From assembly GCF_003704095.1 (NCBI RefSeq), contig NW_020846105.1, forward strand, positions 186,001 to 243,311: a DNA stretch of 57,311 nucleotides, given 5' to 3'. Of this stretch, positions 459 to 57,311 are shown one piece after another. Below the pieces are notes generated by a model. It searched no databases, was not told the origin of the DNA, and was given only the letters and a program-made list of their open reading frames with translations. The stretch comes from Pocillopora damicornis (taxonomy: Eukaryota). Made by a program: the position numbers and the translations under genes. Position 1 is the first letter of the stretch, and the number at the start of each line of letters is the position of its first letter.

Positions 459-3400
459 TTTTTCAATTTGGAACACAATGATGGGTACCTCACTATTAAG
501 TATACCTTGGGCAATTGATCAGGTTTGTGAATAAATAAAAATAAAGAGTTAGACTAAAATGATATTTATAGAAGATACATTACAAGATAAAGAACTCTCA
601 CTGGTGAAAGACTGAGGTACTGATTTGATTCACTCGGAGTGTTCCCATACTAATCCTGATTAAACAAAAAAAAGGACCAGTTTTATTATGTCTGTGTGTG
701 TCTCAGCACTAATACGATATGAACTACAATAAAGAACAGTAGCCAGTAAAAACACTAACTGTAAGTTAACAATGAATGTATCATATCATGTTTTCCAGGC
801 TGGTTTTGCTCTTGCCATTATTCTCTTGGTTGTCATGGCAGGTCTTTGCCTCTATAGCTGTTACTTGATAATAAGATGTGCAGAAGAAACGGGTTAGTGA
901 GGTTTTTGAATTCACATGATTATAATGTTATTCATTATTAATGATATACGAAATTAATATAACATGTTTATGCAAGTAACTTTATTAGTGACTGATTATA
1001 AATTTTCATGATGTAATTAATTAGGCCGTAATTCTGCCCTTCATGAAACATAGATCCTTGCCTGCCCTAGATAGGACCTGACTCCTAATTAGTTGGTTTG
1101 ATTTTCAATTTACCGTTCCTTTAGCAAAACAAGGTGACGTCCTAGAATTTTCTGATATCTGTAAGAAGTACCTTGGTAAGCCAGGAGAGTTCATTGCAAT
1201 CCTGTTTTCTGTGGCTGCTAATGCTGGAGGGGCCATAGTCTTTTGGGTTTTAATGAGCAGCTTCTTGTTCTATTCTGGAAAGTACATTCATGGTAACTAT
1301 CTTCTTTTGTATTAGCTTGATGCAAGGTTTTGGTCAGTACAGGTCTTCAGGAAATGGCAGAAAATTTAAAAATGGGTCACTGTAATTTGTTTTTACCACT
1401 AATTAAATGATTCATTCATTGGAAGGGAGTTGTATTCCCCATATGTTATACAGATTAAAAGTGAGTAGTGCTTAAATTTTTAACATTTCATCTTTATTTA
1501 ATTATTTATTATTTTTCAAGTTTTGTAGAATCTCTTTGCTAAAACAATGTACTAATTTGTATTCTTATCCTGTTTTAAAAATTATTTTATTTTTCCTTCC
1601 TGTGTTATTTCTATTATTATTACTGTTAGTATCATAATTATTAAACAGACTATTAATTTGTGTTATAGAGACTGTCCATCATGCTTATTCAGTTCCCACT
1701 TCCAGAAATATTACAAATGGAAGCTTCTCCCCAGGCCACTTAGAAGGTATTTTGGTGTGAATTAATCCAAGAGAACTATTTACTTTTCAATCTTATAAAT
1801 CTTAAATGTGTGGCTTGAATACAACTTTTTCTGCTCAATTACTCCTAATCAGATACCCATATTTTCTATTCCTTTCTCCTTCCATACTCCATCTTTTGAT
1901 TTACCATCTTAACGTTTTGATTTTCTATCTTTTGATGTTCCATCTTTTCAGGTTCAGTTCATCCTTTTCCCATTAATTTTTACCATCCTTTCCTTTTTGC
2001 AACAACACATTAAATTTCTGTCAGTTGGTAGGACAGTTTGTCTGACACTTATTCACTTTTTCAGTTATTCATTCATTCATTCATTCCACACTGTACTTGA
2101 TAATTTATTAATCCTTTTATCCAAGGTGTATTTAATTAATTTTCTTTTTATTAATTCGTCCATTTACAATATTTTTAAAGTAAATTGCTTTGATCTTTGA
2201 TTTCTTTGTTTCAACCTCTTCTTTGTGCACGTGATAAGGATAGAGTAAGAAAATTATAACTGAACAGCTGCCTGTATTTCGAACCACTTTACTTTTTTTA
2301 TGTTAATTGGTTATTTCTCTTTTGATCTTTTTACAGTTCTTTGCCCTGGTGGCCACAGTGCATCAGCAAGCTCTGCAAACAGATTAATAACAGCTGACAA
2401 AACAAGCTTCTTCAAATTCTGGCAGCTCCAACACACCGTACCCCTCTTTTTAATTGCCATCCTGTTTCCCTTGTGCAGTGTAAAGTCACCAACGTTCTTC
2501 ACTAAATTTAACTCTCTTGGTGAGCTCACTGTTATAGAGCTAAGGCAATTGTTTTTAATGTAAAGTGAGGGTATTCATGAACAGTCTCTGTCTCAATTCT
2601 TTACATGCAGGAACCTTATCAGTTGTGTATATTGTTGTCTTCATCATTACCAAAGCCAGTATATGGGGAATTCACATGGATTTTAAACATGACAGCATAC
2701 CAAGTAAGTTAAAAGGGAACCTCTAATGGATACTTAGATGTTACAGTTAGTCTTATTGACTGACTTATTGTGTGGATATTACCATAATTGTTAGATAGAA
2801 CTCAAGATGGGAGGGATAAATGCCATAAAAAAAGATATTTGCAAATTTAGGAAAAAATACATGGACTGCATGCCACTATAAAGTTACTAGGTAGTTCTGG
2901 ATATTATACAGTATAGGTGATATAGATCTATCTATATTTTTGTTGTAGTGTTCAAGGCTAGTTTTCCAGCTCTAACAGGAATACTTACTCTGGCCTACTT
3001 TATTCACAACTGCATTCTTTCAATAATGAGGAATCAGGAGAATCCTAAAAATAATGTAAGTGCTTCAAGTAAAAATATTAAAAGGTGTTGTTTATTGCTG
3101 CCCAAATATGAATCAGAGTGTTCTTGTTCCTGTAAAGAGTCATTATGCAATGTGTATGGATAATCCTGCGACCCTAGTTTATTAATTTAACCCTTCAACT
3201 CCCAGAATTGATTTATGTGTAACTTTTCCTTAGGATATATCCATACATTATCCAGCAAACAGTTAGGTAATGAGAATACTCAAACTTATCGAGTAAAAGT
3301 GTTATCTTGATCTGATACCAAATTCTCATAGCTAGTTTACAAAGAAATTTGCAGCAGCTGGAGGGGAGAATTGACAATCAGATCTTGGGAATTAAAGGGT

Positions 3401-5353
3401 TGAGTTGTTTACCCTACATTTCACCAGGAAGGGTTTCTTTTCACTTCCCTAGTCATCCATAGGTTAAGCCACAAAGCCTCAAACTTATCTTAGATAGGTT
3501 GTTAAAGAGGTTTCATTATTTCTTTTAGCACTCAAACTTGTAGAATAAGCATATATATGGCAGCTGGGATATGCTTGATAAAAATTAGCATTTTAATTTT
3601 ATTGGAAAAATTACCTCTTTTAATTATTCTTTTTTGTCAGGCACGTGACCTCAGCATAGCTTACTTCTTGGTAGCTTTAACATACATAGTTGTTGGTTTG
3701 CTGTTTTTTATTAGTTTTCCCAGAGAAAAGTCTTGCATTCAAGAGGTAAAGTGTATAGTTGGTTCTTCAATAAAATTAGGAGAGAGGTTTTTGAACATTG
3801 TAAATCAGTTAGTGCAGTGGACCTTACTGTTGGATGGACATGGAGTAACAAACCAGTCAAAGCTTAAGTGCAAGACAAAAAACATTACTTAACAGTAGTA
3901 TTATTCAATAAATAACTTCCTGATAGCATGAATTAGATGTTTATCCTAGAAAATGCAAAATTAAAGTTGGTGCAAAACCACATTTTCATATATTACCTTA
4001 GTTTTCTACACACTTCTTAATGTTTTTTTAATGTAATTAATTGCTCTTTTACTGATGATGTTTTCATTATCCTGTAGGTTCTTCTTGATAATCTTCCAGC
4101 TCCAGACATTATGACATTTATAGCAAGGCTTTTTCTCCTGTTTCAACTTACCACTGTGTTTCCATTGATTGTTTACATCATACGTGTGCAACTCATGTTA
4201 TACTTCTTTAACAAAATTTATCCAAGGTAAGTTGGTTTGAAGCTTTTCTTTTCATTGCCTTTTGGAATTTGTCAACTGGAAATTTTTTTAATTTTATAAG
4301 TGATGAATTTGTCAGATGTTATTTTTTGTGGGGGGCTAGTTAATTTGGTTTTAGATAATTTAAATTGGTCACTGTAAAGAGTTTCTACAGCTGACATTTT
4401 GAGCATTAGCCTTTTGTCAGAGAAAAAAAAAATTGAAAAAACCTTCATATTTCACTCAGACAAAGGGTTTATACTTGAAAAGTGACCAATCTATATCATC
4501 AACTCAGTTGATAAAAGCAAATTATCCTGTAATTTCCCCTGCCAATGCAGCATCGCAGTTTTTGTAGAATCTTACCCCCTTTACTGTTTTTAGGACAGAT
4601 TGGTGGCCAAGTTTGTTAAAGGTTCAAAAGTGTGATTGTAATATATGAAGACCTATAAATGTCTATTTTTTTACAAAAAAACTTGTGTTGTTGTTTTTCA
4701 CAGCTTCCTACATATATTTGTCTTGAACCTAGCCCTTATTGGAGCCTGTGTATTATTTGCTGTAGTTTATCCACATGTTGGCAACATAATCAGGTAACTA
4801 AAGGAAATCCTCAGGATTACAGTTGAAAATGTCAGAAACAGGCTTGGTCCGTTCTTGGTTACTTCTCTCAAAAAAAAAAATAGAAAAAATCAGACAAGGA
4901 CATTACCTGAAATGTATTGCCAATCTCCTTCTCACTTTAACTCTAGACCAGAAACAGTTTGTAATTAAAAAAAACATTGCGGCTCCCTTGGTCTTACTAC
5001 ATGACCACTGTGCACAGGTTGTCAAATTAACAACTTAATTTCACCTCAAATTTATTCCCCATTTTTTTGTCTCTTTTTGCTATGACGATTAAAACGGTCC
5101 CAATTTAATAGAGCTGTCCTAGGGAAAATGGATTCTTATTTCACAATAGCTCACGTGATGCACTCTTGTCTTTTGTCACAGATATGTGGGATCATTAAGT
5201 GGCCTGGCTTACAACTACTCACTGCCATGTATTGTGCACATGCTGATACAGAAACAGAAAGGACAGCTCTCTTGGCCCAGCACTGTGTTCCATTCTTGCA
5301 TTGTTGTTTTTGGAGTTCTGAATTTTTTGTCCCAGTTCTTTATTAATGGATGA
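459..5353 (+). CDS. SLC38A9: SLC38A9-like lysosomal amino acid transporter, copy A (5' exons missing)
   Basis: Eleven frame-consistent GT-AG exons: 459-522, 799-892, 1125-1292, 1669-1746, 2337-2519, 2611-2703, 2949-3055, 3641-3745, 4078-4226, 4704-4793, 5182-5353 (TGA). The translation has SLC38A9 signatures FSIWNTMMGTSLLSIPW, WVLMSSFLF, SPTFFTKFNSLG, LTLAYFIHNCI, ENPKNNARDL and LLFQLTTVFPL. Confidence 0.92.
3187..3403. mobile_element. ~210 bp MITE with piggyBac-like ends, in an SLC38A9-A intron
   Basis: TTAA|CCCTTCAACTCCCAGA ... TCTTGGGAATTAAAGGG|TTGA: imperfect terminal inverted repeats with CCC/GGG termini and TTAA-like flanks. Related copies occur at 9423, 10508, 12569 and 13232. Confidence 0.75.
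4362..4583. repeat. Decayed fold-back interspersed repeat
   Basis: Nested inverted arms: ATTGGTCAC (~4364) / GTGACCAAT (~4482), and GAGCATTAGCCTTTTGTCAGAG (4401-4422) / CTCAGACAAAGGGTTTATACTT (4455-4476). The right boundary is approximate. Confidence 0.5.
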
Positions 5354-7815
5354 GATTATTTTTGATAGTTCAATTCGATGTTCTAATCTTGTAATACGGT
5401 AGAATAAGATACTTGAGATATGTTTTCTATGCAGTTATGTGGCAAATTGTCTCGAGGATTTAATTAAGACCTCAATGTTAATGGTTCCTACAATCAAATG
5501 CGTTAAATGTTCAAAATTCGGTGGACTACTTTAATTACCTGGTGCAGGTCACTGTCATACTGTATGATTTCGATAAAGTTTTGAGAAATATGCGCATCGT
5601 CACTGGTTAACTCAGTTAAATTCTCTATTCTCTTATTTGATAACATGATGTACCTTTTTTTACCGTACTCATGTTTTTTATCCATAATAACTCAGCTTTC
5701 CACACTAACATATGCGTTGAATCGTTTTTATAAGAAAAATTTTATCAATTTTCAGATCATTGTTTAGTGGAATAAGGACTGGGAAAAAAAGATTTAAACA
5801 TAAGAAGTACAGTCACGAAGTATTTAATGCTGGCTCGACCTCCTTACTAGTCTCCTTCGCAGTCTGTCTTCGGTTTTCACGTAATGGGGAGCGTTGCGCG
5901 ACTACCCAAAGATGGGCTCCCTTGTGTTTGCACTTTTCCCCTGTTTTGGGACATTTCCTGGTTCGTATAACTAAACAATGCACTTAGATAGGAGACATCA
6001 AACAAAAACCTGATTGAAAATATATATTTTTTGAAAATTGTAATGTAATCAAAGTCAGTAAATGCCCTTCACGATAAGAAGAGGTGAAAGCACAATGACA
6101 TTTGAGTTGATAATTTTGCTCTGGTTTTATTATTTATTGATCTGTGCTTTTTTGGGGAATTAATTTATTCCGTTTCCGTAACGAATATTTTGGGAAACGT
6201 CTATTTTTAGGTGGTGTTTTTGCTGCGTCTGAAGACCCTCGATACGGGTTTGCACCTGATTAAAAGAATTTCTATGTTCCAAATAATTTTATCAATATGC
6301 AACGGGTATCTTTGTGGGGAGAGGTTTCAAATAATAAAATAAAACCGCAACTAAGTCACTGATCTGTAAATAGTTTCTTACTGCTTTGCACTTTAGTTAA
6401 ACCCCCCACGTAACTTGGCACCTAACAAATTTTGGTACACGTTGCAAGAAAATAATCTAGCCTTTGGAGAAACAGAGATGTACTCGAGAGAGGTTGGTTA
6501 AAGTGGTACACCAAAGGGGGGACCAACTGCCTCACAAAATAAGGACCCACTTAAGGGCTCCTTCATGATCTCGAGCCTTTATTTGTTAAGACAAAGTGAA
6601 GTGGCGCGGTAAGGATGGTAAAGGTGAAAGTTTATTAAGTGCTAGACTAAGAGAGCTAAGCGTGTCAGTTCATTCTTCTCGAAACGAGTAGCACAACATT
6701 TTCAGATGTCCTCTGTGAATCCATAGAGCTTTATGTATCACCCCTTTCTACAGAATATTATCAACTCGTATGTGTCTCCATCACAATGAAATCTGTTCGC
6801 GAGGTTGTCAAATATTGATGCAACGATGGATTTTCATCCCAAATCAGCCCGTGCTCCAGCCCTTTATGAAAAGCACCACTTTAATAACTCCTAAATAAAA
6901 TAAATTGTTGAAAGACATATTATCCGGAGCAAAACTCTGAAGGCATCTTTTCATTCTGGTCAATCGTTCCCATCACACATGCCGTAGGTTTGTCATGCCC
7001 CTTTACTTTCAACAGTCGGCACTGGGGTGTGGCTGTTTTTGCCTAAGGTTAATTAAAAATTAAATTGGGTAGTGAACTCGTGACCCCGAGGTCAGTTAGT
7101 TTAACTACTTTTAATACTTACCTGGGGGACCGTAAGAAAATTGATTGATTTGGTGCAACCTCTGACCTTTATTTGTTACCAGACAGCCTACAAACGGGCA
7201 CACACTTGTGAACAGTTTTATAAAGTGCATGTTGTGCACTTTACTCGTCTCAACTTGTCCTTTAGATGCTCCTGACACATGATGTAATTTGGTGTTAAAC
7301 AACGTAGCCTGACTGACTTATATCACTCACGGGAAAATGTTTCTTCTGTCAGAGAACAAAGTGTTTTGCTTGGGTTCTTAAATAGGATGAAATTTACGAT
7401 AACGGTCTTCGTAAAACGCTACTTCATTATTAATAATAAGTAATAATAGTAATAAGTAAAATTCAAGGAGCAACTCTCCAAAAATCGATCCTGTTCTTTG
7501 TTTGGTCGTATTCTGTTACAGTTCCGAGTTCCATCACATCACTGCGGGTAAACCACGTTCCCGCCTCTGGATCTTGTGTCTTCTATTAACTGCATGTTTT
7601 AAAAGAGACGTTTTAAAAAGCTCGTGACTCGGTGGTGACTGGTCAAGACGGGTATAACGCTTGTACGCTCCTGTGTTGATATTTACAATACCCCTCGAAC
7701 AAGACCCGATATAAGCCTTCATACAAAAAGCTGCCTTGTTCCTCCAAAAGGAAAAATATTTAAACAAAGCACAACTCAGCGTCAGTTTACCCGACTGAGA
7801 ATTTTGAATCATATC

Positions 7816-10800: not shown

Positions 10801-13800
10801 AAGTCTATCCCAATTATTTTAATATAAAATAATGTATCTACTTTTGATAATGCCAAATTTGAAGTTCAACTCTAGTACTAAGGAACTTATCAATTAAATT
10901 ACCTCTTTTGTCTCTTTAGTGGAGCATGGAGATGTTGTGGAATTTTCTGCTTTATGTAGAGAGTATCTTGGTAAACCTGGAGAGCTCATTGCAGTATTGT
11001 TTTCAGTGGCACCTCTCGTCAGTGCAGTCATTGTATTTTGGGTTTTAATGAGCAACTTTCTCTTCAACTCTGGAAAATACATCCAAGGTAAGGTATTTTA
11101 TAAGTATGGTACATGACTTACGACTAAATTGAAATGTTAAACAAACCTGTTTATGAGTATAAAATTGACACCTTCTAACCGTAACAACTGTTTATTCAAA
11201 TAGTTTTTCTTTCCTCCCATTTAGAAAACATATTTTCAGTTGCACTAGTGATCAACTCTTCAACCACTTTGGAAGGTAGCAAAAAGTTTATGTCTATGTC
11301 CATAGAGTATTATTTTTTATGTGCTATTTGCCCAACAAATTTACTTGTGGCATGATTGTTCATGAGTTCATTTTAAATTTTTCTTCATTTTCATCTGCTT
11401 TATCCATCTACCTGTTAGAAACACTTTTGGTAAACACTTTAAATACTTTATATAAATACTTTGTTGAGCTCTCTGCTCATGTTATCCACACACTTTTTTT
11501 CAGTGCTTTGCCCAGGTGGCTACAGTGCAGGGGTAACTTCTTCAAATAGCTCAGTTATTCAGGATGAAAATTCATTTTGGCATGTTCAACACACCGTACC
11601 ATACTTGTTGATTGCTGTCTTCTTTCCACTGTGCAGTGTCAGGTCACCAACTTTTTTCACAAAGTTTAATTCTTTAGGTAAGGTAGTATTAAGTTTCTTT
11701 GATCAGTGTTGTTTAGTTTATCTTTTTCTATGTCCTCAATATTTTTTTTGTAATCTCTCTCTCTCTTTTTTCTCTTCAAGCTCAGTCAATTTATATAATA
11801 GGTAACAGACAGGGAATTTTATAATGTACTTACCACCTCTTGTGTCATAAAATCTGTAGTACAGTAATGACAAAGAGACTTTTGCCTTTGAAATAACAGT
11901 CACTGATGAAAGAAACAGGAGTAAACATGGGGATTAATTGCAATGGGTTACAACCTGTGGGCCCACAGTCCAAAACTAACTATTTATTCATGCAAAATGA
12001 TATTTATGTTGTTTATGTAGTCTCATGCCAACCACAGCTGGAAATCTCAAAAGTCACTTGTCAAGAACATTTCAAGAGGTTGGGTTGGTGCTGGAAAGAG
12101 AAATTTGAAAAAGAATTGGCACGAAAAGAATAGTATAGAGCCAACATGTCTCCATACAACTACAGGAGTAGCATTTACTTTTAAGCTTGACTTCAGTTGG
12201 CTTAAACATTTGGACTGCATCTGATAGAATGCAATTCTTAAATGGGCTGTTTCTAGTTACCTTTATACTTTTCTCTACACAGGAACCGTGTCAGCCATCT
12301 ACATTATCATCTTCACTATTATCAAAGCCAGCATATGGGGAGTCAACCTGGACTTTAAAAAAATACCAAGTAAGATCTTGAAGCTAGTGCTGATTAAAAA
12401 AAGTTTAACATCAGTAAAAGATACTGGTACTTGAGTTAGAGCAAGAAAATAAAAATCACTTAGTAAGATATAATTTAGGTTTACAAAATATTAGATAGAT
12501 GACCAATTAAGAAATGTTATTAAATAATAACATTACACAAATCTTAGTCCAAACTTAGAAGGATGGTCTCAATCCTTTACGTCCTAACATCACTTTGCAT
12601 ATTCTCCATACTGTTCCCAATACATTTCCTAGGGTGCAGACAAGGAGAATTTGTTAAATTATCAAGAGGTCCTTCTGTAGTTGATGATCTTTTTCTCTAT
12701 TGTCATGACTTTAATGTTTGATTCAGTGGTGTTACTGTAAGGAGAAATAAGATGGTAGTCACTCTTAGGGTGAAAGGGGTTAAGTAGAAAGAAGATTTCT
12801 GTGTAACATTTTTTTAAAACTGTAAAGCAGCAGTTTATTTGTTATTTTGTTAGCTTTATATTTTTTACCTTAATTTTGTTTGGGAGTATGTGTCCAAGAT
12901 TGGCAATAGTTCATGATAAAGAAGTAATGTCTATCATTATTTGTAGTTATATGGGATATTTTTATACTAACATGTCTCCCATTTCTTCTGTTGTAGTGTT
13001 CAAGGCTAGTTTTCCTGCCCTAACAGGTTTACTTACTCTGGCCTACTTAATTCACAACTGTATTCTATCAATAATGAGGAACCAGGAGAACCCTAAAAAT
13101 AACGTAAGTGATCCATATTTTTGAAGGTTACTCTCAAGTGTTTATTTATTTAGTTTTGCCCAATTATAATACAATAGTATTAATTAAATGCAATACAATA
13201 GTGTTAATGAAGTATTTTAAATTGAAGTTTCTGACTCCTAGGGGTAACTAGTTTCTAGTGCCTCCTCATAACATCACCCCTGAATCACACCTTAAAGTTA
13301 TGAGAGTAAATGAAATGATCACCTATTAAAGAAGCTCTTAAATTTTTAAACAAATTCTCCTTGTCAGTGCCCTTGGGAATGTATGGAGAACAGTATCAAG
13401 AACAATAACATACTGATGTAAGAGTTACTCTTTTCTCTTCTTTCATTTCAGGAACGAGACCTCAGTGTAGCTTTCTGTCTTGTAGCATTTACATATACAC
13501 TTGTTGGAGTGCTGTTCTTCATTTCTTTTCCTAGAGAAAAAGATTGTATTCAACAGGTAATATATCCTACCAAAAGTTGTGCATGACTGTATTTAGAGAT
13601 GTACAGATTTACTAAAATATATCCCTACAAGTTATGTGCCCTTGTAGTGGATGCACCCTAAACAATTCCTTTGCACTTTTGCAAATCTTTAGTGTCTGAT
13701 TTTTAGAGAGTATGCAGCTATCAAAGCAAAAGGTAACTGGGCAATTAGCCTGAGACTGAATGAAAGGACAATTTATTAAAATTGTTTTTAATTACCTCAA

Positions 13801-14525
13801 TCAATTTTTAGGTTCTTCTTGATAACTTTCCAGCTGCAGATGTTATGACATTTATAGCTAGGCTCTTTCTTCTGTTTCAACTTACCACCGTGTTTCCTCT
13901 GGCCATGTATGTCATACGTGTGCAGTTCATGTTCTATTTCTTCAAAAAAACCTATCCCAGGTGAGTTTGTTTCTAGATCTTCTGCCCTGCATGTGCTCAG
14001 GTAACAGGTTGCAAAATAGTTTTTGTAGTGTAGCAATATACTTTTTTTAGTATCCAGTGCAATTTTTCATACCTAAGCAATATTGCATGTGTTCTACTAA
14101 GGTAACTTCCTCTCTTTTAATTGAGCTGATATTCTTTTACACAGCTATCTACATGTGTTTATCCTAAACTTTGTACTGATTGGGACCTGTGTATTATTTG
14201 CTGTGGTCTACCCACATGTTGGTGACTTTATCAGGTAACTAATAATGGACAACCTAACTGTCATGTGAGCATGTGATATATGGTGTTTTAGAAATTTTCA
14301 TGGAGGACCTTTTCATTTTGTTTTATATTATTGTTATTTTATCCCATTTAAAGGTATGCGGGATCATTAAGTGGAGTGGCCTATGATTATGCACTACCCT
14401 GTATTGTGTACATAGTGATACAGAAGCAAAAAGGAAAGCTGTCTTGGCTGAGTGCTGGATTCCATTCTATTATTGTTTTGCTTGGGTTTGCTAACTTAAT
14501 GGCTCAGTTCTTCACTTCTGCTTGA
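7816..14525 (+). CDS. SLC38A9: SLC38A9-like lysosomal amino acid transporter, copy B (complete, 547 aa)
   Basis: Fourteen exons: 7816-7952, 8998-9163, 9291-9370, 10150-10213, 10375-10468, 10920-11087, 11225-11275, 11504-11677, 12283-12369, 12997-13103, 13452-13556, 13812-13960, 14145-14234, 14354-14525. They total 1644 nt, open from ATG to TGA. The N-tail has an EKSPLI dileucine-type motif plus RKPF, NRYRYISRL and IIPSHLLP. TM1 is WNTMMGTSLLSMPW. Intron positions match copy A. Confidence 0.92.
9423..9607. mobile_element. MITE with piggyBac-like ends
   Basis: TTAA|CCCTTTAACTCTCA ... TGAGAGTGAAGGG|TTAC, with internal similarity to the 3187 element (e.g. ACCAAATTCT). Confidence 0.7.
10508..10687 (-). 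mobile_element. Degenerate MITE of the 3187 family, reverse orientation
   Basis: GATCTGATTATTAATTTTCCC...GAGAATTTGGTG...GAGTATTCTCAT...GGGAGTTATAGG is the reverse complement of blocks in the 3187 element. Ends are eroded. Confidence 0.6.
12569..12783. mobile_element. MITE with piggyBac-like ends
   Basis: TCAATCCTTTACGTCCTAA ... TTAGGGTGAAAGGGGTTAA termini. The core GACAAGGAGAATTTGTT is shared, inverted, with the 13232 copy. Confidence 0.65.
13232..13427. mobile_element. MITE, inverted relative to the 12569 copy
   Basis: 13345-13402 is a close reverse complement of 12602-12658. Confidence 0.65.
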
Positions 14526-38452: not shown

Positions 38453-38552
38453 NNNNNNNNNNNNNNNNNNNNNNNNNNNNNNNNNNNNNNNNNNNNNNNN
38501 NNNNNNNNNNNNNNNNNNNNNNNNNNNNNNNNNNNNNNNNNNNNNNNNNNNN
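38453..38552. other. Assembly gap (100 N, probably unsized)
   Basis: Exactly 100 N. Confidence 0.99.
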
Positions 38553-48199: not shown

Positions 48200-50212
48200 T
48201 TATATGGTGTTGTTGACCTGCAGGATGACCGAACCATGTGGTGTAAATTCTGACGAATTAGCATCGGAACAGGCTATGTTGCTGAAAGACGTCATGGCTG
48301 ACAAACTGGACTCTTGCTGCATCTTACGAAGCCTGATAACACAAGGGCCGGCAGGTAAATTACCGTTTGAACTTGATTGCTCAAGATCAACTGAAAGAGA
48401 GTATCGTGATCTGTTTTTTCGAACCCAACCAAAGTACATACCGAGGTTGGTGATTTCCATGGTTACTTTAAAACAACATAGAAGTCGGATGAACTCTTTT
48501 CTGTATTCTCTGTTACTGAGGCAATAAATCCATGGATTTAAGCAGGAGTTAGACATGGCTAAAATATTGGTAAATAAGTAGAATTCAAAGGGAAGTTTCA
48601 AAATTTCAAACTTGTATAGAATGAAAAATGTTTCTGCCGGAAGCCAACATAATGTTAAAAAGAAGGCTGCTAGTGCACACATGCGCAGTAACCGCTTGGT
48701 GGCCTTGTTGTGAGAATTCAAATGGCGGCGAATGTTGGGTTGGCGCATGTGCGACCAAATGTCTCCAAAGGTTATCCAAGTGACTATGCTCGGTATGTAG
48801 AACGTGATGATCACGTGAAGAAGAATTAGGATCCGTTCCGTCCTTTCTCCGTAGAATGGAGTAACGAATGTGCAAACGCCATCTTCCGTTGTGGTGATAA
48901 AGAGTTCATTGATCTGAGTTATAGCGGCAGAGGCCCAGATTAAAGTTATGTACAGGTACAAACGTCGCTTGCTGAATGCTGTTTTGTAGCGTATGGGCTT
49001 CACTATGGAGTACCAACGATCTATAGCCAGGCACATAATCGTGGAAGTTGAAGCTTTACCAAAGATAAACAGAATGTAGGTTGAACCAATCAAACGGCAG
49101 TAAATCTCTCCTCCGAGTCCAGTTGGGTAGGGAAAGTTTTTCCTGTCGATCAGGTAGTCTGGTGTAACAACAAGGAAGATCCCTGTTTGAAAAATCAAAA
49201 TATCACTGTCTCCATTATTATATTAATTTTATATCTGCGCCACAAACTTAAAGAATTACTTTTTGAGGATCAAGGTGATTGTGGTTTTAGTCTGTCCTAC
49301 TCTTTGTCCTTTTTTTATTTAACCAATGGAAGATTTGGTGATCTGTAGCTCTAGCGAAAAATTTTATTTGAGTTTTCGATGCTTACAAGGGATAGGCGCA
49401 GGTCCAACTGAGAAGTGCGGCATGTGTTTCGTCCAAACAAAGAAGAGCAGATGTAACTTCTCAGACTTTAAATTTGATGGAGTTTGTAGTCTGCTTAATA
49501 ACATTTTGGATTTTGATTAAATGAAGTATCTACTTAGACGCTACTTGCTGATCCATGTTACCTATCACCCTTCATTAAACGATGAAGCGAAAGTACAATC
49601 TCCAACTTTAAAAAGCCAAAGCATAATCTAAATCGGTGACTTTCCACACTGGGTGCAGTGCAAGTTGTTCAGCTGGAAAGATGTCTAGCTGAACAAATAT
49701 CTGGTTTACAAGGCTGATATAAATGTCAAAGACCCAGATACATCGAAAACAAAACAGAAAAAGATGTTTGAATGGCAATTTTTTAATGGAATATTGGAAT
49801 ATTTCTCCTCTCGAAAGGAAAACAAAGGTAACAAGAATTCTATTGGAAATAGATCGGTTACTATTTTTGTAACGAAAGTCGAACAATTGGCACATCATGT
49901 CACATTTACTATTGTTGTATGACACTGTGAAACAGACGCATAAATCGTACTCGCACTACTGGTCTATTAAAACATACCTGTGAGCATATCAGTTAGGGCC
50001 AGGTTGCAAATAAGAATATTGTACGGCTTTTTCAACATTGAGCGCTTCATAAAAATGACCAGACAAAGAATCAAGTTGCCAAAAAACGAAAGGCTAGCGA
50101 TTAATCCAAACGATGTTTTCATTATAACACTGTGGTCTCTAGCTCCAACGGAAACGTTGCTATGGACAGTTTGGTTACTTGCACCATCAAGTGTAGCAGA
50201 TACGTTGTTCAT
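48200..50212 (-). CDS. Class A orphan GPCR 6, ~405 aa (proximal first exon V1 plus exon 2)
   Basis: Exons 50212-49978 (donor CAG|GTATGT) and 49182-48200 (acceptor TTCAAACAG|GG). Motifs: GN, LALTD, DRW, RLLRMC, CWLP, NSCLNPWIY. Confidence 0.9.
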
Positions 50213-50318
50213 TATTCTCAATTCCGTCAAGCAGAAAAAAATTCAATTTATCTCAAGGAAGCTTCGTAATAAACGTCGTTTTAGAGTCGGTAGACAAATA
50301 TGTCTTCAATACCTCTTG

Positions 50319-50324
50319 TTTATA
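50319..50324 (-). promoter_or_regulatory. Possible TATA box of GPCR 6 exon V1
   Basis: TATAAA on - about 110 nt upstream of the ATG. The AT-rich background makes a chance match plausible. Confidence 0.25.
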
Positions 50325-51805
50325 AAGCTGCTAACTGCTTTGTATGCCTTACGTTGATTTGCTGAAAGAAATTCCCTTTGCATATGTCAAAATGAAATCT
50401 GTACAGAGGGTTGATATGCAACGGAAGTTGGTCTAAACCATTTCACTTACGGCCATGATCAAATATTAATAGCACTATTCACATTAAGATCACTGCGGTG
50501 AGATAAAACTTTTTTGTATATGTCTAACAATGGAAATGCGACAGTGACAGGGACCGCATGGGATAAAGTAATTTGTTATCGCTTTCACCCATGTTATCCT
50601 TTTATTTAATGAATCTGAGGAGAAGTTTTCTCAACTTTTTGTGCTTTAACTCTTCTAATTAAAGGAAAGATAAGATTTTTTTTCACCAACTGATAAAACG
50701 TCGTAATTCTCGAGTGACTCTGTCGCAAAACTTCATTGCAAAAAATTATACTGCATCAAGCACTAACGAGCCAGTTCGTGAGTAATCGATCAGATATTCA
50801 ATAATCATCCAGTGTCAAAAGAATTGTGCGAAAGAAGCACAAATCAATTTCCGTTGATTGCTCAGTTTTTTGGACCGTGATTTACGGTACAAACTTCCTA
50901 AGAGTGTTGAGTGATCATTTGAGCTACTTCATGTTCACCTGTTATTGTTTGTATGTCTAAAGATCTCAATATGGCAGATATATTTTTAACTCACTGATTT
51001 TTTGATCATGGAGTCATCCTTATTTGACACTGAACTTCATACGGTGACGTTGATATCGTTCCAAATAAATCTGTCACCCTTATTGTAAAAAGCTCTTTCG
51101 TTGTGACAGCTTCTTGACGTTTCTGTACGCTTATATTATGCACTGAAGTCAACGAGATACAATTTTTTCTTATTAAAAGTTGAATCTTCCAGTCCTACTC
51201 TTTTTGTAATGGGGAGAAGTTGAAGTTTACGAATCTATTCTGCCGATAAGCGTAGCAGTTAGCTCTCATCATACTTCACAAACACGACAGGAAATTTTGA
51301 TCCTGGCTTAAGATGATAAAAATGAAATATTTACTTCATCTAACTTAAGAGATAAAAAACGAGTTGAGCTGAGTTATGAGGCGTAGTACATAGCAGGTTT
51401 ATTGTCCTTAGTTACAAGAATCAAAGCCACTACTCCTGACGATCTTAGTGTCTGATTCTCTATGAAATGATGGGTAATGAATCCTCAACCCACGCTCTCA
51501 TTTTGTAGCGATGAAGATTTCGTTCTAAGTGGTGGAGAATTAATATGAAATCTATTTTTCTAGGATGGTACTTTTCAAATAATAAAAAATCCAAATTTCA
51601 GATAATATTTGAATAGTAGGTTTTGTTTAATAAAAAGTGACCTAGGATATTAACCGAGAAATGGAAGGCGAACAAATTGCAGTTTGTATGGTGGTGGTTT
51701 TTACACAGTATAACGTTAATCATCAGTTTTACTATGTGTTTTTTTAATACCTCGATTAATTCGAATGTGAATTAATATATCATGTTTATAGTAAATGTAA
51801 CAAAC

Positions 51806-52046
51806 CTGTGAACACATCTGTGACTGCAAGATTCAAAACAAGAATATTGTAAGTCCTTCGTAACAACTGGCGACGCCGGTAGATGGCCACACATAGAAAC
51901 ACATTTCCCAGAAAAGAGAAAAATGCGATATTTCCGAAGAGAACTCGAAATATTTCAACTTTGCCTTGGAATTGGTTCGTTGGGGGCAGGAAACTTTCGT
52001 TACCCCTCGAGAAATTTGTTTTTGAGGTTAAGTTAACCCGAATCAT
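51806..52046 (-). CDS. Stand-alone GPCR first exon V2 (N-terminus, TM1, ICL1, half of TM2)
   Basis: 241 nt = 80 codons + 1. MIRVNLTS...FLGNVFLCV...TYNILVLNLAVTDVFTG. Donor CAG|GTTTGT, the same donor sequence as the SLC38A9-A exon ending at 522. No dedicated exon 2. Confidence 0.8.
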
Positions 52047-52528
52047 TGTCGTGGTGGCTGCATGTAGAGCAAGGAAAAGACAATAAAAATTGCTGAATTG
52101 CGCGTATTGATTTTCTCCAATGAAATAAGGTCGACATCACTACTACAAATTTTGAATACCTTAGATTGACGTTTGCTTGACCGTATAAAACCAGCCACCA
52201 TTTCTTGGGATTTGCTCTCAAATGTAAACAAATTACAACAAGCTATGAATCTTTATAACATGCAAGAAAACACGTTTGTTCTCGTTGTTTGCATGGAGAA
52301 GAAATCACCTTGCTAACATCGACTATGAAATAAAACGGTTGCTTATGATGTAATAATTGTATGATAATTTTCCCGGTTGTATGTAAAGAATAATAATTGT
52401 ATCTTCCGAGCACATAAGGTGGTGTCAGCAAAACACTAAAGACTTCGTTGAATCTGAATTATTTATCACACGTTATTGGACATCAAGGAAGTCGCATTCG
52501 ATGCGTTAAACGAGTAGGTCCGACTGTT

Positions 52529-52614
52529 TCAGTCAATCAGTCACTCAGCTAGTCAGTCAACAAGCTATGCAGTCAGCCTGACGCCAGTGTGCCAGTTGAC
52601 AAGTCAGTCAGTCA
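52529..52614. repeat. Degenerate (CAGT)n tract
   Basis: Interrupted CAGTCAATCAGTCA...AGTCAGTCAGTCAG. Confidence 0.6.
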
Positions 52615-54251
52615 GGAAATCGATCAAGACATAAGCCAATGATTCAGTCAATAAGTCGGTGGGAGTTTGTTTTCCCCATAGATTAAGACGGAAGGAAAGG
52701 GGCTATGTAATAGAAATTTTTTTTTTTTAATTTCACACTTGTGTAAATATACAGACAGATTTGTCAAGTTGTCTTTTTTTAACTCAGAAATGGAGTTTAA
52801 ATTTGAAAATATCGTAGCCGAAAATTTCATTTTTTTTTTCTAACTTGTGCGACATTCAACACTTTCATGAAAGTTTCATTAAATTGACAACAAAGGTGAA
52901 AGTAAATATGTAAAGAGGAGCCGGGTGCATTACATGAGCGTAAACAGGGGAGAAAAATAATCTATGGCCTTTCATTTTGACATTTGACAGTGCGAGATCA
53001 CCATATACAGCTGAGCTTTGCTCACACTGATTCTTTAAACTCGAACTGAAAGCTATTTTCCATAGAACGTAATTTCTGGATATTTATCATGAGCTACCCC
53101 TGATATCCCGAGCTGTTCGTTCGATCATTTCGCTTTGACTTTTCAAAGTTCTTTGACACGTTTCCGTTGATGTTTGAATTGCGACAAACAGTCGTCACTA
53201 CAAACGACAACTCGTCACTGTATTCATGATAGCAGTGTTAAAAATACGTAATATTTCGTCGATGAAAGAAGCCTTTGAGGTCTGTAGATTATTGAGAAGA
53301 TGACAAAAACAGTTTATAAGGGAAAAAGTGCCATGATCTGAATTCATAATTCTTAACTTTTTATATTTCTTTTCATAAAGTATAAACATTGAGGCTCTCA
53401 GTTTAAGTGTTCCTGTGTGATCCTTCACGATGACATTACCTTTTAATACTTTTTCGTCTCGAATTCAAGCAAGGTAACGGCCAGAGAGCCATAAATATTT
53501 AACTGTCGTTTAGTGTTTAGAATTATTCCAATTAGAAAGTGGTTTATTGCAATTGGCCACAAATACAAGATGACTTTCTTTCTATGCAAATTTCTGGTCT
53601 CTTTTTCGTAAAATAGAGTTAGAATGGTGATCATCTTTTTTTCTTAGGACCTTTGCGAATGGAACTCTCTACCTTCAGAGGTTGTTAATTCTATGTCATC
53701 ACTAATTTTTTTGGACCAATTTAGCGAATTATTACTACTTATTACGTAGAGATGGCGATATAAGACTCGCTGTTATTTTTCTTCCACCTTTACCGTCCTT
53801 AATCAAATGTTGATGTAAGTCTTCCAAATTGATTTTAAATGTACCATATAAATATAAGGCAGTTTTTCTTGCAGAGACAGCGTTTCAGTGTTATGTATTA
53901 TAAGTAATGCTCTGTATTTCTTTTCAAATGGTTTTGTTAGTGCTCTTGGTCTTTCTCTAATCAAAGGAATGGTCTGCACTTCGCTTATTTTCTTGATGCA
54001 AAAAAGAGTTAAACGAAAACACTCACACATAAGCAGTCAAAAATTTTTAACGAGTAGGCCTTCAAATTCCGTGATTTGCCTGATGTTCACACTACTTTGA
54101 ATGAGTATGCGCACCTACTGCATCAGAAATATATACTACATTGGAAACATACCTTTCATCTCTACAAAAAAATACGAAAAATACACTAAACGCCCTTAAA
54201 AAATCATAACGACTTCAAGCAGACTGTACTGAGAGGCTCGATTTGTCTAAC

Positions 54252-54501
54252 CTGTTAACATATCTGTAACGGCAAGGTTTAACACCAGCATATTGTAAGT
54301 CTTTCGAAGCAATGTTCGGCGTTTGCAAATTGTCACACAAAGGAGAATGTTGCCGAGGAAAGCCCCAAATGCAATGCTACCAAAAATAATCTTGTAAACA
54401 TTATTGACATTGTAGTCAACCTTGTCGTGATGCTGACGTGACGCAAGAATAAAACTTTCGTTAAAGGATGAGTTTGTGCCCAAATTCGTTGTTGCGTTCA
54501 T
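54252..54501 (-). CDS. Stand-alone GPCR first exon V3
   Basis: 250 nt = 83 codons + 1. MNATTNLG...FLGNILLCV...TYNMLVLNLAVTDMLTG. Donor CAG|GTTAGA. No dedicated exon 2. Confidence 0.82.
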
Positions 54502-55981
54502 CCTCTGAACGATGTGTTTCACAATGACTTCAGCGGACCATAGCGCGGTAACCGTTTTATTTGTTTCTGAAACACCTGTCCAAACAGTTCTCTACGCTAG
54601 TTATCAATCGATCTTTCTAGCTTTTTATTCCTGGTTGATTTCTTTCCTTTTAATTGATTTCAATAAATTTCTCCCTTTTTTAACAAAGTTAAATATATTT
54701 TACCGACGTTCTTTCATCAATTTTCTCGGAACCATATTTGTGCTCTTTAAATTTGACCCAGGTGTGTACACAGTAAAAATACAATTACTTTTAGAATCGG
54801 AGCTTTTCCTTCCCATTAGAGTATAAAGTTTCTTATCATTTTTTTCAATTCTTTTAAAATGATGAAACATTAGGACAGTGGGTTTTACCGGAATAACCTC
54901 TTATAGCTGGTAATCTTGCAGGAAGTTCAGTCAAATTGACAGTTTGACTCCACTCCAATGCTCAATTTGAACTTAAGTGGTTCATGTAGTTCCTTGAAAA
55001 TCAGCTTCTGTCTGCTAAAATAATATGTTTAAGCTAAGACAATACAATATAATATTTCTTTACCATCGAAAAGACAGATGTGAAACGTTAACCAGACTGA
55101 TTAAAACTGTGCTGTTTAATATAGTTGGATTTCTCCTCTTTTCTCTGTTCTTAAATTTGAATATACAACTATTATTACATTTCGAGGAAATGATGAAATG
55201 TGCAATAATGCTTTTAGCCAATCAGAGCGTACAGAGTGGCTGATCAGTTTTATACATATCTAATAATGAGAAGCTTGGTGTCTCTATGTGTAAGGTCAAA
55301 GATAACAGTCGTTAAAATTAAACAAACCCGATTCCCTAAAATGAAAAAGGAAATATCTATAACATTTTTCATCAATGCAACCAATTTTGTCAAACCTTAA
55401 CAAACTGATGTATGAAAAACGTTAGAAAGTTTGCGACATACAACAATTAGCTTTTACGTTTTGACACTCTGGGCTTTCTACAGACTACATTTTTCGGAAT
55501 TATTTAATATTGAAATAATCGTCACTGTTTAGAATATCTGCTAATTTTTTTAAACCTGCTTGTAAACCAAGGTAAAAGGCTGACCGTTGCTCTTCAAAGC
55601 TTTCCTGTATGCGCAGTTTTACTCACTGTTGACCACGCCTAAACTAATTTCGGCCGAGATTGAATTAAAGGCACGTTGTCATAAACTAGTCTACTATTTC
55701 GGTTATTAAAAAGTACGGCAATGCATTTTGGTTTTAGCATTTCGTCCTCCAGATTCATCATTGACTTGAGATTTATTTTCAGATTGTTTTGAGGTATGGA
55801 ATTGTTTGAATTGCATTTTTCAAAGGCGAAGAAAGCAGAGCCGCATTCAATATAGCTAAATTCACGAATGTTTAATTGTACATGTACATTTGTGTGTAGA
55901 TGTTTACATGGGCACAAAATGAGTGAAAACCTTCACACAGTTCTGTAACTATTCTGGTGATGAAAGCTTTCCCATACTTAC

Positions 55982-56231
55982 CTGTCAGCATATCTGTAAT
56001 GGCAAGGTTCAGCAATAGAAGGTTGTACGTCTTCGAGAGCAGTGATCGCTTTTTGCACATGACGACGCAGAGGAAAAGGTTACCAAGAAAGGATACTCCA
56101 GCGATTCCACCAAATATGAATTTATAAACATCACTGACAATGTAATCGACCTTATCGTGATGAAGTCGACTTGGGATAATTGAACTAATATTAGCGTTTG
56201 AATTTGAATTCCAAGAGGCTGATATGTTCAT
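55982..56231 (-). CDS. Stand-alone GPCR first exon V4
   Basis: 250 nt = 83 codons + 1. MNISASWN...FLGNLFLCV...TYNLLLLNLAITDMLTG. Perfect donor CAG|GTAAGT. No dedicated exon 2. Confidence 0.83.
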
Positions 56232-57311
56232 CTTTCAAAAGATGTTTAACATCTCCTCATAATCCTGTCCAAAATTAATTCATGGGAAGGAAGCGTCCTA
56301 TAATGATGTCTTACGGATCAAATATCGAAGAGTGTTGATTGAAAAGTGACAAAAAACATTTAATTCTTGTTATGCACCTGCCTAGCTGTTTGTTGCACAA
56401 TAATATTTCAAATTTTACCCCATGTGATTATTTACCATTGTTGTTGAATGGTCGGGTAACCAAAGACATCATAAACTTGAATGATACATAATTCCTTTAG
56501 ATTTTTTTCTTCGTCTCCGTACAGAAAAACATTTCTTATTTCTGAGGACATAGTCCACCTGGAGGGTTTAAAGAACGTGTATCTTTTCGAGAAAAAAGTC
56601 AGAATGATATATATTGCGTAAGATTCGTATTTTTGGTTCTCGACTGAGATGTTTTTTTTTTTTAATCCCCGGGGAAGTTCCATGGAAAAGCCCAAAAGGA
56701 AGCAACAGAGAACTGCCACGTGATCCATGTAAAAAATAGAGCAAATTTTCTTTCTAAGGTAAGCAATGAGGTGAGATACATCTGTTCCCTTTACTCTCAG
56801 TCACTTAATGAGGACTGTTTACCTGTGTCCTACTGATTATATAATTCTTTTTTAATCAATAGAAAGTCTCTTTTGATGTAAGAAATGTCCCTTACAGTGA
56901 ATTAATCATACTACGCGAAAGAGTAAAGGACAGGGATTATGTAGGCCACATGAGACGAAACAAACATTGTGCGTTGAGTTTTAATTTACTTTGTGCAAAA
57001 ATGTATTGAACACCTAAGTTAAAGATCATGATTGAGTTTATTTTCGAATTACGTCGCTAAAGTTAAAAACGTGAATAAGACCTTGCTCTTCCAAGTCACA
57101 TAAATTTGGCATCCAATCGGCAACACATTTAACATGAGCACTGAGAATTTCCTTGTTTAAAATGTTACTTAGGTGGTGGTCGAGAAAATTCTTGTTTGTA
57201 CTGCTCTAAATTCAGAATCGTTAGACGCTTAATTCATGATGGATGTCTCTAAAATTGAATCATTATTCTTGGGCACTTCACACAGGAAAGTGCATACAAG
57301 ACCATTATACA

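Follow-up and report, generated by a model that had tools for sequence, protein, structure and literature searches.

Four paralogous coding first exons in tandem upstream of a single constant exon at a class A GPCR locus of the coral Pocillopora damicornis

Introduction

The question raised by this locus is whether four paralogous exons, lying in tandem in front of a single exon that encodes most of a seven-transmembrane receptor, are live alternative first exons of one gene, internal exons behind a common leader, relics of partial duplications or what is left of a collapsed assembly. The diversity of GPCR repertoires is generally attributed almost wholly to whole-gene duplication, and no published account of such a layout for a cnidarian or a class A GPCR was found in the literature. 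The window, that is, the whole stretch of DNA analysed here, comprises 57,311 nt of contig NW_020846105.1. The layout had been predicted from its letters alone, and our analysis followed up this original prediction.

Results

Layout of the array

The array consists of four paralogous minus-strand exons (e1a to e1d), each with an ATG, glycosylation sequons, TM1, ICL1 and the start of TM2, and of the constant exon e2 (Table 1). All four e1 exons have a length of 3n+1, start with the ATG, stay open throughout and end in phase 1 at ...ACAG/GT (the slash marks the exon boundary), while e2 follows the acceptor ...tttcaaacag/GG at 49182 and is then open to its stop, the Gly codon being split between e1 and e2 as G/GG. 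The exon coordinates, ATGs, sequons, motifs and phase-1 donors of the original prediction were correct to the base. A matching acceptor for the e1 donors is offered by e2 only, so the first exon that heads a transcript would join e2 and the first exons downstream of it would leave as intron.

Comparison of the e1 exons with each other gave pairwise tblastn E-values of 1e-13 to 2e-31. A repeat search of the region showed that its only four-copy direct repeat is the 3' 67 nt of the e1 exons and detected no flanking similarity around them. The prediction of a single TM2-TM7 exon, with spacers free of N and of e2 remnants, also held: tblastn of e2 (E<=10, word size 2) revealed no remnant in 49183-57311, its sole match in this stretch being on the opposite strand and at chance level, and the stretch contains no N, the gaps of the window being located at 47-312 and 38453-38552 only. 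The contig terminates at the window end, and the array upstream of e1d is visible only that far.

Table 1. Features of the array locus and its relatives
Feature	Position	Strand	Description
Constant exon e2	48200..49182	-	Rest of TM2 through TM7 and C-tail; 326 aa + stop; ORF read from sequence
Proximal first exon e1a	49978..50212	-	235 nt; 78 codons + 1 nt; 3 sequons; donor ACAG/GT
Variable first exon e1b	51806..52046	-	241 nt; 80 codons + 1 nt; without own e2
Variable first exon e1c	54252..54501	-	250 nt; 83 codons + 1 nt; without own e2
Variable first exon e1d, most distal	55982..56231	-	250 nt; 83 codons + 1 nt; without own e2
e1a/e2 intron	49183..49977	-	GT..AG ends; no e2-like remnant, no N
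Introns for e1b, e1c, e1d transcripts	49183 up to 51805, 54251 or 55981	-	GT..AG boundaries
Conserved non-coding patch	51033..51160		blastn vs L013 74% over 135 nt; about 0.8-0.9 kb upstream of e1a ATG; candidate regulatory element
Two conserved non-coding patches	52340-52438, 52854-52946		blastn vs L013 76%, 82%; 0.3-0.9 kb upstream of e1b ATG; candidate promoter or enhancer
Conserved non-coding patch	55205..55341		blastn vs L013 68% over 142 nt; 0.7-0.8 kb upstream of e1c ATG; candidate regulatory element
Antisense spliced RNA	49778..56949	+	Pieces 49778-49827 and 56678-56949; X9 contig 21
Two-exon relatives outside window			Contigs C1045, C2707, C138, C2308, C572

Receptor class and content of the modules

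The two kinds of exon were analysed separately. Exon e2 matched positions 53-260 of the Pfam profile PF00001 (7tm_1) with 112.3 bits against a cut-off of 30.5, and each e1 matched positions 1-32 with 18-23 bits, which alone is below the cut-off; the exon pieces are thus complementary. Translation of the exons showed the class A motifs GN in TM1 and LA(L/V/I)TD in TM2 for all e1 and, for e2, AIDRWY as the D/ERY-type motif of TM3, LCWLP as the CWxP of TM6 and NPWIY as the NPxxY of TM7. By profile and by signature motifs, the product of the locus is a rhodopsin-class (class A) GPCR.

Each e1 codes for a whole N-terminal module, in which a glycosylated ectodomain tail is followed by TM1, by ICL1 and by the first half of TM2 with its conserved Asp. 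The output of the gene would then be up to four receptors with a shared TM2-TM7 body and different N-termini, TM1 and ICL1, and these isoforms may differ in expression site, ligand access, trafficking, dimerisation or coupling. Peptide binding by class A receptors can involve the N-terminus and TM1, so the earlier description of e2 as "one ligand-binding core" is an approximation.

Ordinary relatives of the array gene

The window also holds five two-exon paralogues of the same family (27.5-46.7 kb), of which four each possess a full first exon and the fifth only a partial one, adjoining an N gap. Gene birth and death mark the evolution of the surrounding cluster. Elsewhere in the genome, all seven family members detected at E<=1e-3 had one first exon per e2, and no hidden e2 copy above 43% identity was found. 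The ordinary paralogues resemble the array locus in family and in the phase-1 intron within TM2 but have one first exon for each e2, supernumerary first exons occurring at the array locus only. The array was clearly derived by duplication from this ordinary two-exon gene type.

RNA junctions

The RNA evidence consisted of assembled contigs, at low depth, from four runs (X1, X5, X9 and X10, the last only guessed to be RNA), and the 5' ends of RNAs are not visible in such contigs. Exon e2 was covered in all four runs, and a 1801-nt contig of X5 over this exon implies a 3' UTR to about 47689. An exact e1b-e2 junction was present in X10 contig 11, which joins 171 nt of e1b to 25 nt of e2 (the shorter side is only these 25 nt) with zero mismatches and skips 2623 nt at the joint 49181/51805, with GT..AG on the minus strand. 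The e1d-e2 junction was found in X1 and X9, two runs from two studies made with poly-A and oligo-dT libraries; it rests on loose contig ends matched back to the window, these contigs leaving e2 into 25-30 letters that match only from 55986 onward, the 3' end of e1d. The junctions to 49182 predicted from 51806 and from 55982 were thus recovered, whereas the one predicted from 54252 was unseen at contig level in the four runs, e1c being represented by one exon-limited X9 contig (54255-54462). No e1a-e2 junction was seen in these contigs either, and e1a had no coverage in X5, X9 and X10 although e2 was covered, which is the only hint that bears on exclusive exon choice.

Conservation in other corals

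The original prediction proposed that conservation in relatives and contiguity of the assembly be checked, and both checks came out in its favour. The independently assembled Tara metagenome scaffold L006 has the order e1d-e1c-e1b-e1a-e2, as in the window, with an e1d protein that is 100% identical, and the partial contigs L007 (e1c, e1b, e1a, e2) and L008 (e1b, e1a, e2) agree with it. Contig L013, from another coral genus, contains no N and carries four intact first exons and one e2 (85% identical to that of the window), followed by the same neighbouring gene; to judge by its name, it comes from a long-read assembly. The e1a-e1d orthologues of L013 correspond one-to-one to those of the window, each with start, frame and donor intact. 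Three intact first exons and one e2 were found in L010, and two intact ones with one e2 in L009. In the gap-free L013, and in L006, L009 and L010, e2 is lacking between the first exons.

Each of the six further coral species covered has an e1a orthologue (L003/L010, L004/L009, L011, L012, L013 and the N-terminus of Oculina P0003). The decay of first-exon relics in L011 (frameshifted, with its donor lost) and L012 (a 1-nt frameshift) indicates that the extra isoforms are dispensable in some lineages. In the annotation of Oculina patagonica, e1c/d-type and e1a-type exons belong to separate gene models, and 4 of 311 residues differ between the e2 parts of the two, so that assembly has two e2 copies, either as a real duplication or as a haplotig. 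A Nematostella relative of uncertain orthology (P0044) has one first exon and an e2 divided by an extra intron, and the array is not evident there.

A first-exon tree grouped the non-a exons of four genera in one clade (aLRT 98.9, UFBoot 89), so the split between a and non-a exons is older than these genera; the tree was built on a smaller set of exons, and branching within the non-a clade is weakly resolved. It replaced an earlier tree that included distant paralogues of the window, which was unresolved and gave long-branch warnings.

Selection on the exons

Comparison of the window with L013, at a dS of 0.45-0.95, gave dN/dS values of 0.33 for e1a, 0.20 for e1b, 0.40 for e1c, 0.16 for e1d and 0.17 for e2. 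The expectation of values below 1 was borne out both for e1b-e1d pooled (0.23; bootstrap 0.16-0.34; Fisher p 5e-16) and between the paralogues e1c and e1d (0.15). The orphan exons e1b-e1d are under purifying selection, of a strength similar to that on e1a and e2. At the DNA level, alignment between genera is essentially limited to the exons, the spacers having diverged beyond alignment except for short patches conserved in L013. In the comparison with the near-identical Tara relative, the changes (1 synonymous to 3 non-synonymous in e1b and likewise in e1c) are too few for constraint to be demonstrable.

Conserved patches upstream of the first exons

The patches shared with L013 lie upstream of e1a, e1b and e1c (Table 1). 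Their position and conservation would suit regulatory elements, and the patch upstream of e1c includes a CCAAT-box-like ATTGG. A shared upstream element like the protocadherin CSE was not found at the coral locus, no such motif common to the conserved patches rising above shuffled controls.

Discussion

The RNA junctions, the conservation across genera and the dN/dS values with exon-limited alignment support the reading of e1a-e1d as variable first exons. With the junctions, the intact orthologues and the dN/dS below 1, the prediction that these are live alternative first exons and not dead fragments was upheld, and we consider it quite probable that this is one stony-coral class A GPCR gene with four paralogous coding first exons in tandem and a single constant exon. 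That each e1 is chosen by its own promoter, as in protocadherin and UGT1A, appears to us, on balance, the better guess from this analysis, its support being the conserved patches upstream of e1a, e1b and e1c. An unlikely alternative is a single promoter with a non-coding leader upstream of the array, maybe beyond the contig end, so that the ATG exons would be mutually exclusive internal exons of the Dscam type, alternative second exons with acceptors of their own whose double inclusion is removed as frame-breaking. Acceptor use could be accommodated, since an AG lies 0-11 nt upstream of every e1 ATG and that of e1b belongs to a good polypyrimidine-CAG 11 nt upstream; in addition, the sequence just before the e1b and e1c ATGs is little conserved in L013, and the conserved patches 0.3-0.9 kb upstream could be leader exons. 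However, in AT-rich DNA chance alone should place an AG so near the ATG in about half of all cases, the one preceding the e1d ATG is not conserved in L013, the four low-coverage runs reported no joint that enters an e1 from its 5' side, and the RNA piece upstream of e1d is part of an antisense transcript from the plus strand and not of a leader.

The e1b-e1d exons could also have been left behind when a two-exon gene was partially duplicated in tandem, in which case their joining to e2 would be tolerated, functionless noise. The birth-and-death evolution of the cluster, the decayed relics in L011 and L012 and the excess of non-synonymous changes relative to Tara, too small in number to judge, would fit such an origin, yet the exons of the other genus are intact in start, frame and donor in four of four cases at the dS and dN/dS (0.16-0.40) given above, they are still alignable where the spacers are not, and junction contigs came from three runs; this explanation, already disfavoured, is very improbable. 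The array itself is not an assembly artefact, because close relatives, assembled independently, show the exons in this order too. That each first exon had its own near-identical e2, the copies having been merged away, might be suggested by the Oculina models, whose two e2 copies are 98.7% identical, and by the fragmented assembly from which the window is taken (4393 contigs), but the window spacers are gap-free, the e1d-e1c, e1c-e1b and e1b-e1a-e2 intervals have no e2 in independent contigs (L006, L008 and X1 contig 7), gap-free contigs from three other corals agree and no extra e2 occurs elsewhere in the genome, which leaves such a collapse with next to no probability.

As a single gene with variable first exons, the array locus is a variant of a known architecture, that of protocadherin, UGT1A and insect Gr39a/Gr28b. 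Like the coral locus, the protocadherin, UGT1A and GCNT2 clusters have tandem paralogous coding first exons that possess a donor but lack a constant part and are spliced to shared downstream exons, and their variable exons are gained and lost between lineages (PMC1885805, PMC3325998). Own promoters for each variable exon are documented in those clusters (PMC1885805, PMC3325998), whereas those of the coral are presumptive. The coral locus has no homology to them and has only four variable exons, which are small (about 80 codons); a coral e1 supplies one helix of seven, whereas the variable exon of protocadherin or UGT1A encodes the whole ectodomain or the substrate-binding domain.

Closer in product are Drosophila Gr39a, Gr28b and Gr23a, seven-transmembrane receptors with alternative 5' exons, which are large, and common 3' exons (PMC2204066). 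At Gr39a, exons have been duplicated, pseudogenised or lost from species to species while selection overall was purifying (PMC2204066), which is also the pattern across corals. Unlike the coral receptor, insect Grs do not belong to the rhodopsin class of GPCRs. Most of an insect Gr is encoded by the variable exon, and the constant exons supply the last helix or helices only; these proportions are reversed in the coral, in which TM1 is variable and TM2-TM7 constant. Among vertebrate GPCRs, the promoter-linked alternative first exons of CRHR2 (alpha, beta and gamma) and OPRM1 (exon 1 versus exon 11) change the N-terminus on the same body but, unlike coral e1, are neither tandem paralogues nor equivalent TM1/ICL1/TM2 modules.

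The coral array varies nothing but the N-terminus, TM1 and ICL1 on one receptor body and has been kept under selection across genera, which makes it a natural experiment on the role of TM1 and the N-tail in ligand access, trafficking, the TM1/H8 dimer interface or ICL1 coupling. It would extend the strategy of variable first exons, used by vertebrate protocadherins, UGT1A and insect taste receptors, to a cnidarian rhodopsin-class receptor. A doubtful though conceivable extension is that a non-bilaterian uses protocadherin-style promoter choice on a neuropeptide-type GPCR, that cell-specific N-terminus/TM1/ICL1 modules alter ligand selectivity, dimer partners or coupling, and that the antisense transcript, whose intron spans the array, perhaps has an influence on which exon is chosen; stony corals would in that case share, as a conserved trait, the diversification of a class A receptor by variable first exons.

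The intron of this antisense RNA (49828-56677), with canonical GT-AG on the plus strand, encloses the whole e1 array; the RNA was seen in one run at low depth and has no long ORF. Its joint in X9 (56678/49827) was at first taken as a non-canonical minus-strand joint, an assignment that was rejected since the joint is canonical when read on the plus strand.

Gene prediction overlooks exons of this kind or joins them wrongly, so coral GPCR counts and expression tables may under-report isoforms. A search with residues 1-83 of P0002 matched only P0002 itself and thus no other annotated protein with a c/d-type N-terminus, and one named gene model, from Oculina, strings two first exons together.

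Organisation of the receptor locus

The four paralogous first exons of the class A GPCR gene (e1a, the proximal one, to e1d, the most distal) and the constant exon e2, which encodes TM2-TM7 and the C-terminal tail, were located as listed in the table below. The coordinates originally predicted for the four first exons were exact, and each of these exons starts with an ATG, is open, measures 3n+1 nt and ends in ACAG/GT, the split glycine codon being completed by the start of e2. The DRW, CWLP and NPWIY motifs are all within the e2 reading frame. The Pfam 7tm_1 profile was matched at positions 1-32 in each first exon and at positions 53-260 in e2 (112 bits); since these matches are complementary, e1 and e2 are parts of one rhodopsin-class receptor.

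Comparison of the first exons with one another gave E values of 1e-13 to 2e-31 and protein identities of 36-69%. Their alignment showed that the glycosylated N-terminus, TM1 and the basic ICL1 differ among the four, while the start of TM2 with its Asp is nearly constant. A repeat search of the region found a four-copy DNA repeat solely in the 3' 67 nt of the e1 exons, and no repeated DNA beyond the coding parts of the array. The spacers hold no N letters and tblastn with e2 (E<=10) detected no e2 remnant in them.

Features of the locus, with dN/dS between the window and the L013 contig of another coral
Feature	Position	Strand	Description	dN/dS
e1a	50212-49978	-	first exon, ATG, open, ACAG/GT end	0.33
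e1b	52046-51806	-	first exon, ATG, open, ACAG/GT end	0.20
e1c	54501-54252	-	first exon, ATG, open, ACAG/GT end	0.40
e1d	56231-55982	-	first exon, ATG, open, ACAG/GT end	0.16
e2	49182-48200	-	constant exon, behind ...tttcaaacag, 326 open codons then stop	0.17
HHDKVDY motif	~54430-54410 (e1c), ~56160-56140 (e1d)	-		
antisense spliced RNA	49778-49827 + 56678-56949	+	X9 contig, canonical GT-AG intron 49828-56677	

The window, which is stony-coral DNA, makes up the final 57 kb of a 243-kb contig and stops at the contig end. The closest proteins are encoded on Tara Pacific metagenome scaffolds (98%), and the closest from a named species is that of Oculina patagonica (79%). A search of the genome (a 234-Mb assembly of 4393 contigs) found no second copy of the locus e2 above 43% identity. 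Five further two-exon paralogues are present in the window, all with the same phase-1 intron, and four of them have their own complete first exon. The seven family members elsewhere in the genome each pair one first exon with one e2, so that supernumerary first exons were found solely at the e1a-e1d/e2 locus among the family loci examined in this genome. The fifth window paralogue has an e2 at 38436-37708 (minus strand), abutted by an N gap (38453-38552), and a partial upstream first exon of 26 residues (40322-40245); this gene is either incomplete in the assembly or a pseudogene.

RNA evidence for junctions between the first exons and e2

Positions 49000-54999 of the window, a stretch that does not include e1d, were compared with assembled contigs of four sequencing runs, one per study (X1, X5, X9 and X10; contig depth 3-14). 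Two of the three junctions expected from the original prediction were recovered. The 51806 to 49182 junction is present in an X10 contig of 196 nt, made up of e1b (171 nt) and e2 (25 nt, the shorter side of the joint) without mismatch; 2623 nt are skipped at the joint (49181/51805, cut +1), which has GT..AG on the minus strand and is the predicted junction. The RNA status of X10 is a guess, and a precisely intron-less contig is RNA-like. For the 55982 to 49182 junction, contigs of X1 (a poly-A metatranscriptome) and X9 (oligo-dT) each pass through the start of e2 into loose letters (25 and 30, respectively) whose single match in the window, from 55986 onward, identifies them as the 3' end of e1d. 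The third junction (54252 to 49182) was not seen among the contigs of the four runs, the X9 contig on e1c (54255-54462) being confined to the exon and ending 3 nt short of the donor.

An e1a-e2 junction was likewise not seen in the contigs of the four runs, and coverage of e1a was zero in X5, X9 and X10 although e2 was covered in them. This silence of the proximal and best conserved first exon in three of four runs, with e2 covered and distal exons used, hints at stage- or tissue-specific use of e1a. X1 also covers the spacers, which reflects either unspliced RNA or DNA.

Contigs of X1, X5 and X10 extend from e2 into the intron (49183-49489, minus strand) and end at ~49447-49489, close to an AG at 49492-49491; X5 covers no first exon at all. 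Possible sources of this coverage are RNA that has not been spliced, an internal start, an alternative acceptor upstream and the antisense RNA of the table. At 52529-52560, 31-nt contigs with 3 mismatches and a depth of 75-380 were found in all four runs; this signal is a short piece of an abundant unrelated RNA or a repeat, not expression of the locus.

Conservation of the array in other corals

Conservation of the array in related species had been proposed as a check, and the same order was found there. The Tara metagenome scaffold L006, an independent assembly, carries e1d, e1c, e1b, e1a, e2 and the next gene in this order, with which a partial Tara scaffold (L007: e1c, e1b, e1a, e2) and a partial Logan contig (L008: e1b, e1a, e2) agree. 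The single 100-N gap of L006 is within the e1c-e1b spacer; the window has no gap there, and a 3.7-kb X1 contig spans this interval. L013, a 116-kb contig of another coral that is free of N and whose name suggests a long-read assembly, has an e2 85% identical to that of the window. It holds four first exons in the window order, each window exon having its best match in the corresponding one. All four keep the Met, sequons, GN, LAxTD and ACA/GGT donor, and they are followed by a single e2 and by the gene that also neighbours the array in the window. In more distant corals (e2 68-72% identical to the window e2), two or three intact first exons precede one e2 (L010 and L009). These layouts argue strongly against an assembly artefact.

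Contigs of two other corals, L011 and L012, each have one decayed relic of a non-a first exon upstream of one intact first exon, e1a, and e2. The L011 relic (6828-6947) is frameshifted and no longer has a donor; that of L012 (853-1044) has a 1-nt frameshift and is separated from the intact exons by a LINE (RVT/endonuclease ORFs, 3237-5791). These relics show exon death beside retention.

In Oculina patagonica, the one named species with an annotation of the locus, two adjacent gene models carry a c/d-type exon (P0002) and an a-type exon (P0003). Between the e2 parts of P0002 and P0003, 4 of 311 residues are different, and the Oculina assembly thus holds two e2 copies, the second being either a real duplication or a haplotig. 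P0002 also has a second, partial first exon strung in frame by read-through, and this model is probably mis-joined. The locus of the sea-anemone relative P0044 from Nematostella vectensis (L014) has one first exon and an e2 equivalent split by an extra intron (L014 11547-11741 / 13443-14117), with a head-to-head paralogue 4 kb upstream.

Selection on the first exons and age of the array

The dN/dS ratios (NG86) are given in the table. A ratio below 1 had been expected for functional extra exons, and that of e1b, e1c and e1d pooled was 0.23 (bootstrap 95% 0.16-0.34); these orphan exons have fewer non-synonymous than synonymous changes per site (Fisher p 5e-16). Comparisons of paralogues and of deeper orthologues, in which dS is saturated, agree (e.g. 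0.15 for c versus d). DNA alignment between genera is confined to exons; the exception is the comparison of the window with L013, in which a few short non-coding patches can be aligned as well, at distances of 0.3-0.9 kb upstream of e1a, e1b and e1c.

A small tree grouped the non-a first exons of four genera in one clade (aLRT 98.9, UFBoot 89; branching inside the clade is weak), which places the proximal/distal split before these genera. The HHDKVDY motif just before TM1 is kept in the c/d-type exons of four genera (the window species, L003, L013 and Oculina), with the variants YHDKVDY and NHDKGDS, while the remaining N-terminal tail is free to vary.

Choice of first exon and comparison with known architectures

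The layout of four first exons and one e2 is confirmed, and the interpretation of live variable first exons spliced to a constant exon is supported in its core by the RNA, the orthologues and dN/dS. The architecture is that of the protocadherin, UGT1A and GCNT2 clusters of multiple variable first exons (PMC1885805, PMC3325998). Among seven-helix receptors, the closest parallel is with the gustatory loci of insects (Gr39a, Gr28b and Gr23a); the variable exons of Gr39a, too, have been duplicated, turned into pseudogenes and lost, under purifying selection (PMC2204066). The coral locus differs in that a small part is variable (one helix, a tail and a loop), the receptor body being constant, and in that it is a class A GPCR of a cnidarian. 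Full-text searches of the literature on such first exons in GPCRs or cnidarians returned no published account of a locus of this kind, and the searched-for term was absent from a large Nematostella GPCR study among the results. We rate the coral locus as a new form of the known variable-first-exon architecture.

We consider it likely that this is one gene with four alternative first exons joined to the single e2. The 5'-most donor, on the first exon heading the transcript, would pair with the sole compatible acceptor, at e2, and the downstream first exons would leave with the intron. Up to four receptors would result, with a common second half of TM2 to TM7 and tail and with different glycosylated N-termini, TM1 and basic ICL1. 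From general knowledge of GPCRs, candidate effects of these modules are on expression domain, peptide access (N-terminus/TM1), surface delivery, TM1 dimerisation and ICL1 coupling. Given alternative first exons, one promoter per e1 is a modestly probable arrangement by analogy with protocadherin and UGT1A genes; the main rival for the mechanism of choice, a less probable one, is a common leader exon with mutually exclusive inclusion of the e1s, which the AG close upstream of every e1 ATG would allow.

The intron of the antisense spliced RNA encloses the whole first-exon array. This RNA, detected in one run at a depth of ~4.7, has no long ORF and could be a regulatory lncRNA, by analogy with protocadherin promoter choice, for which antisense RNAs are reportedly known.
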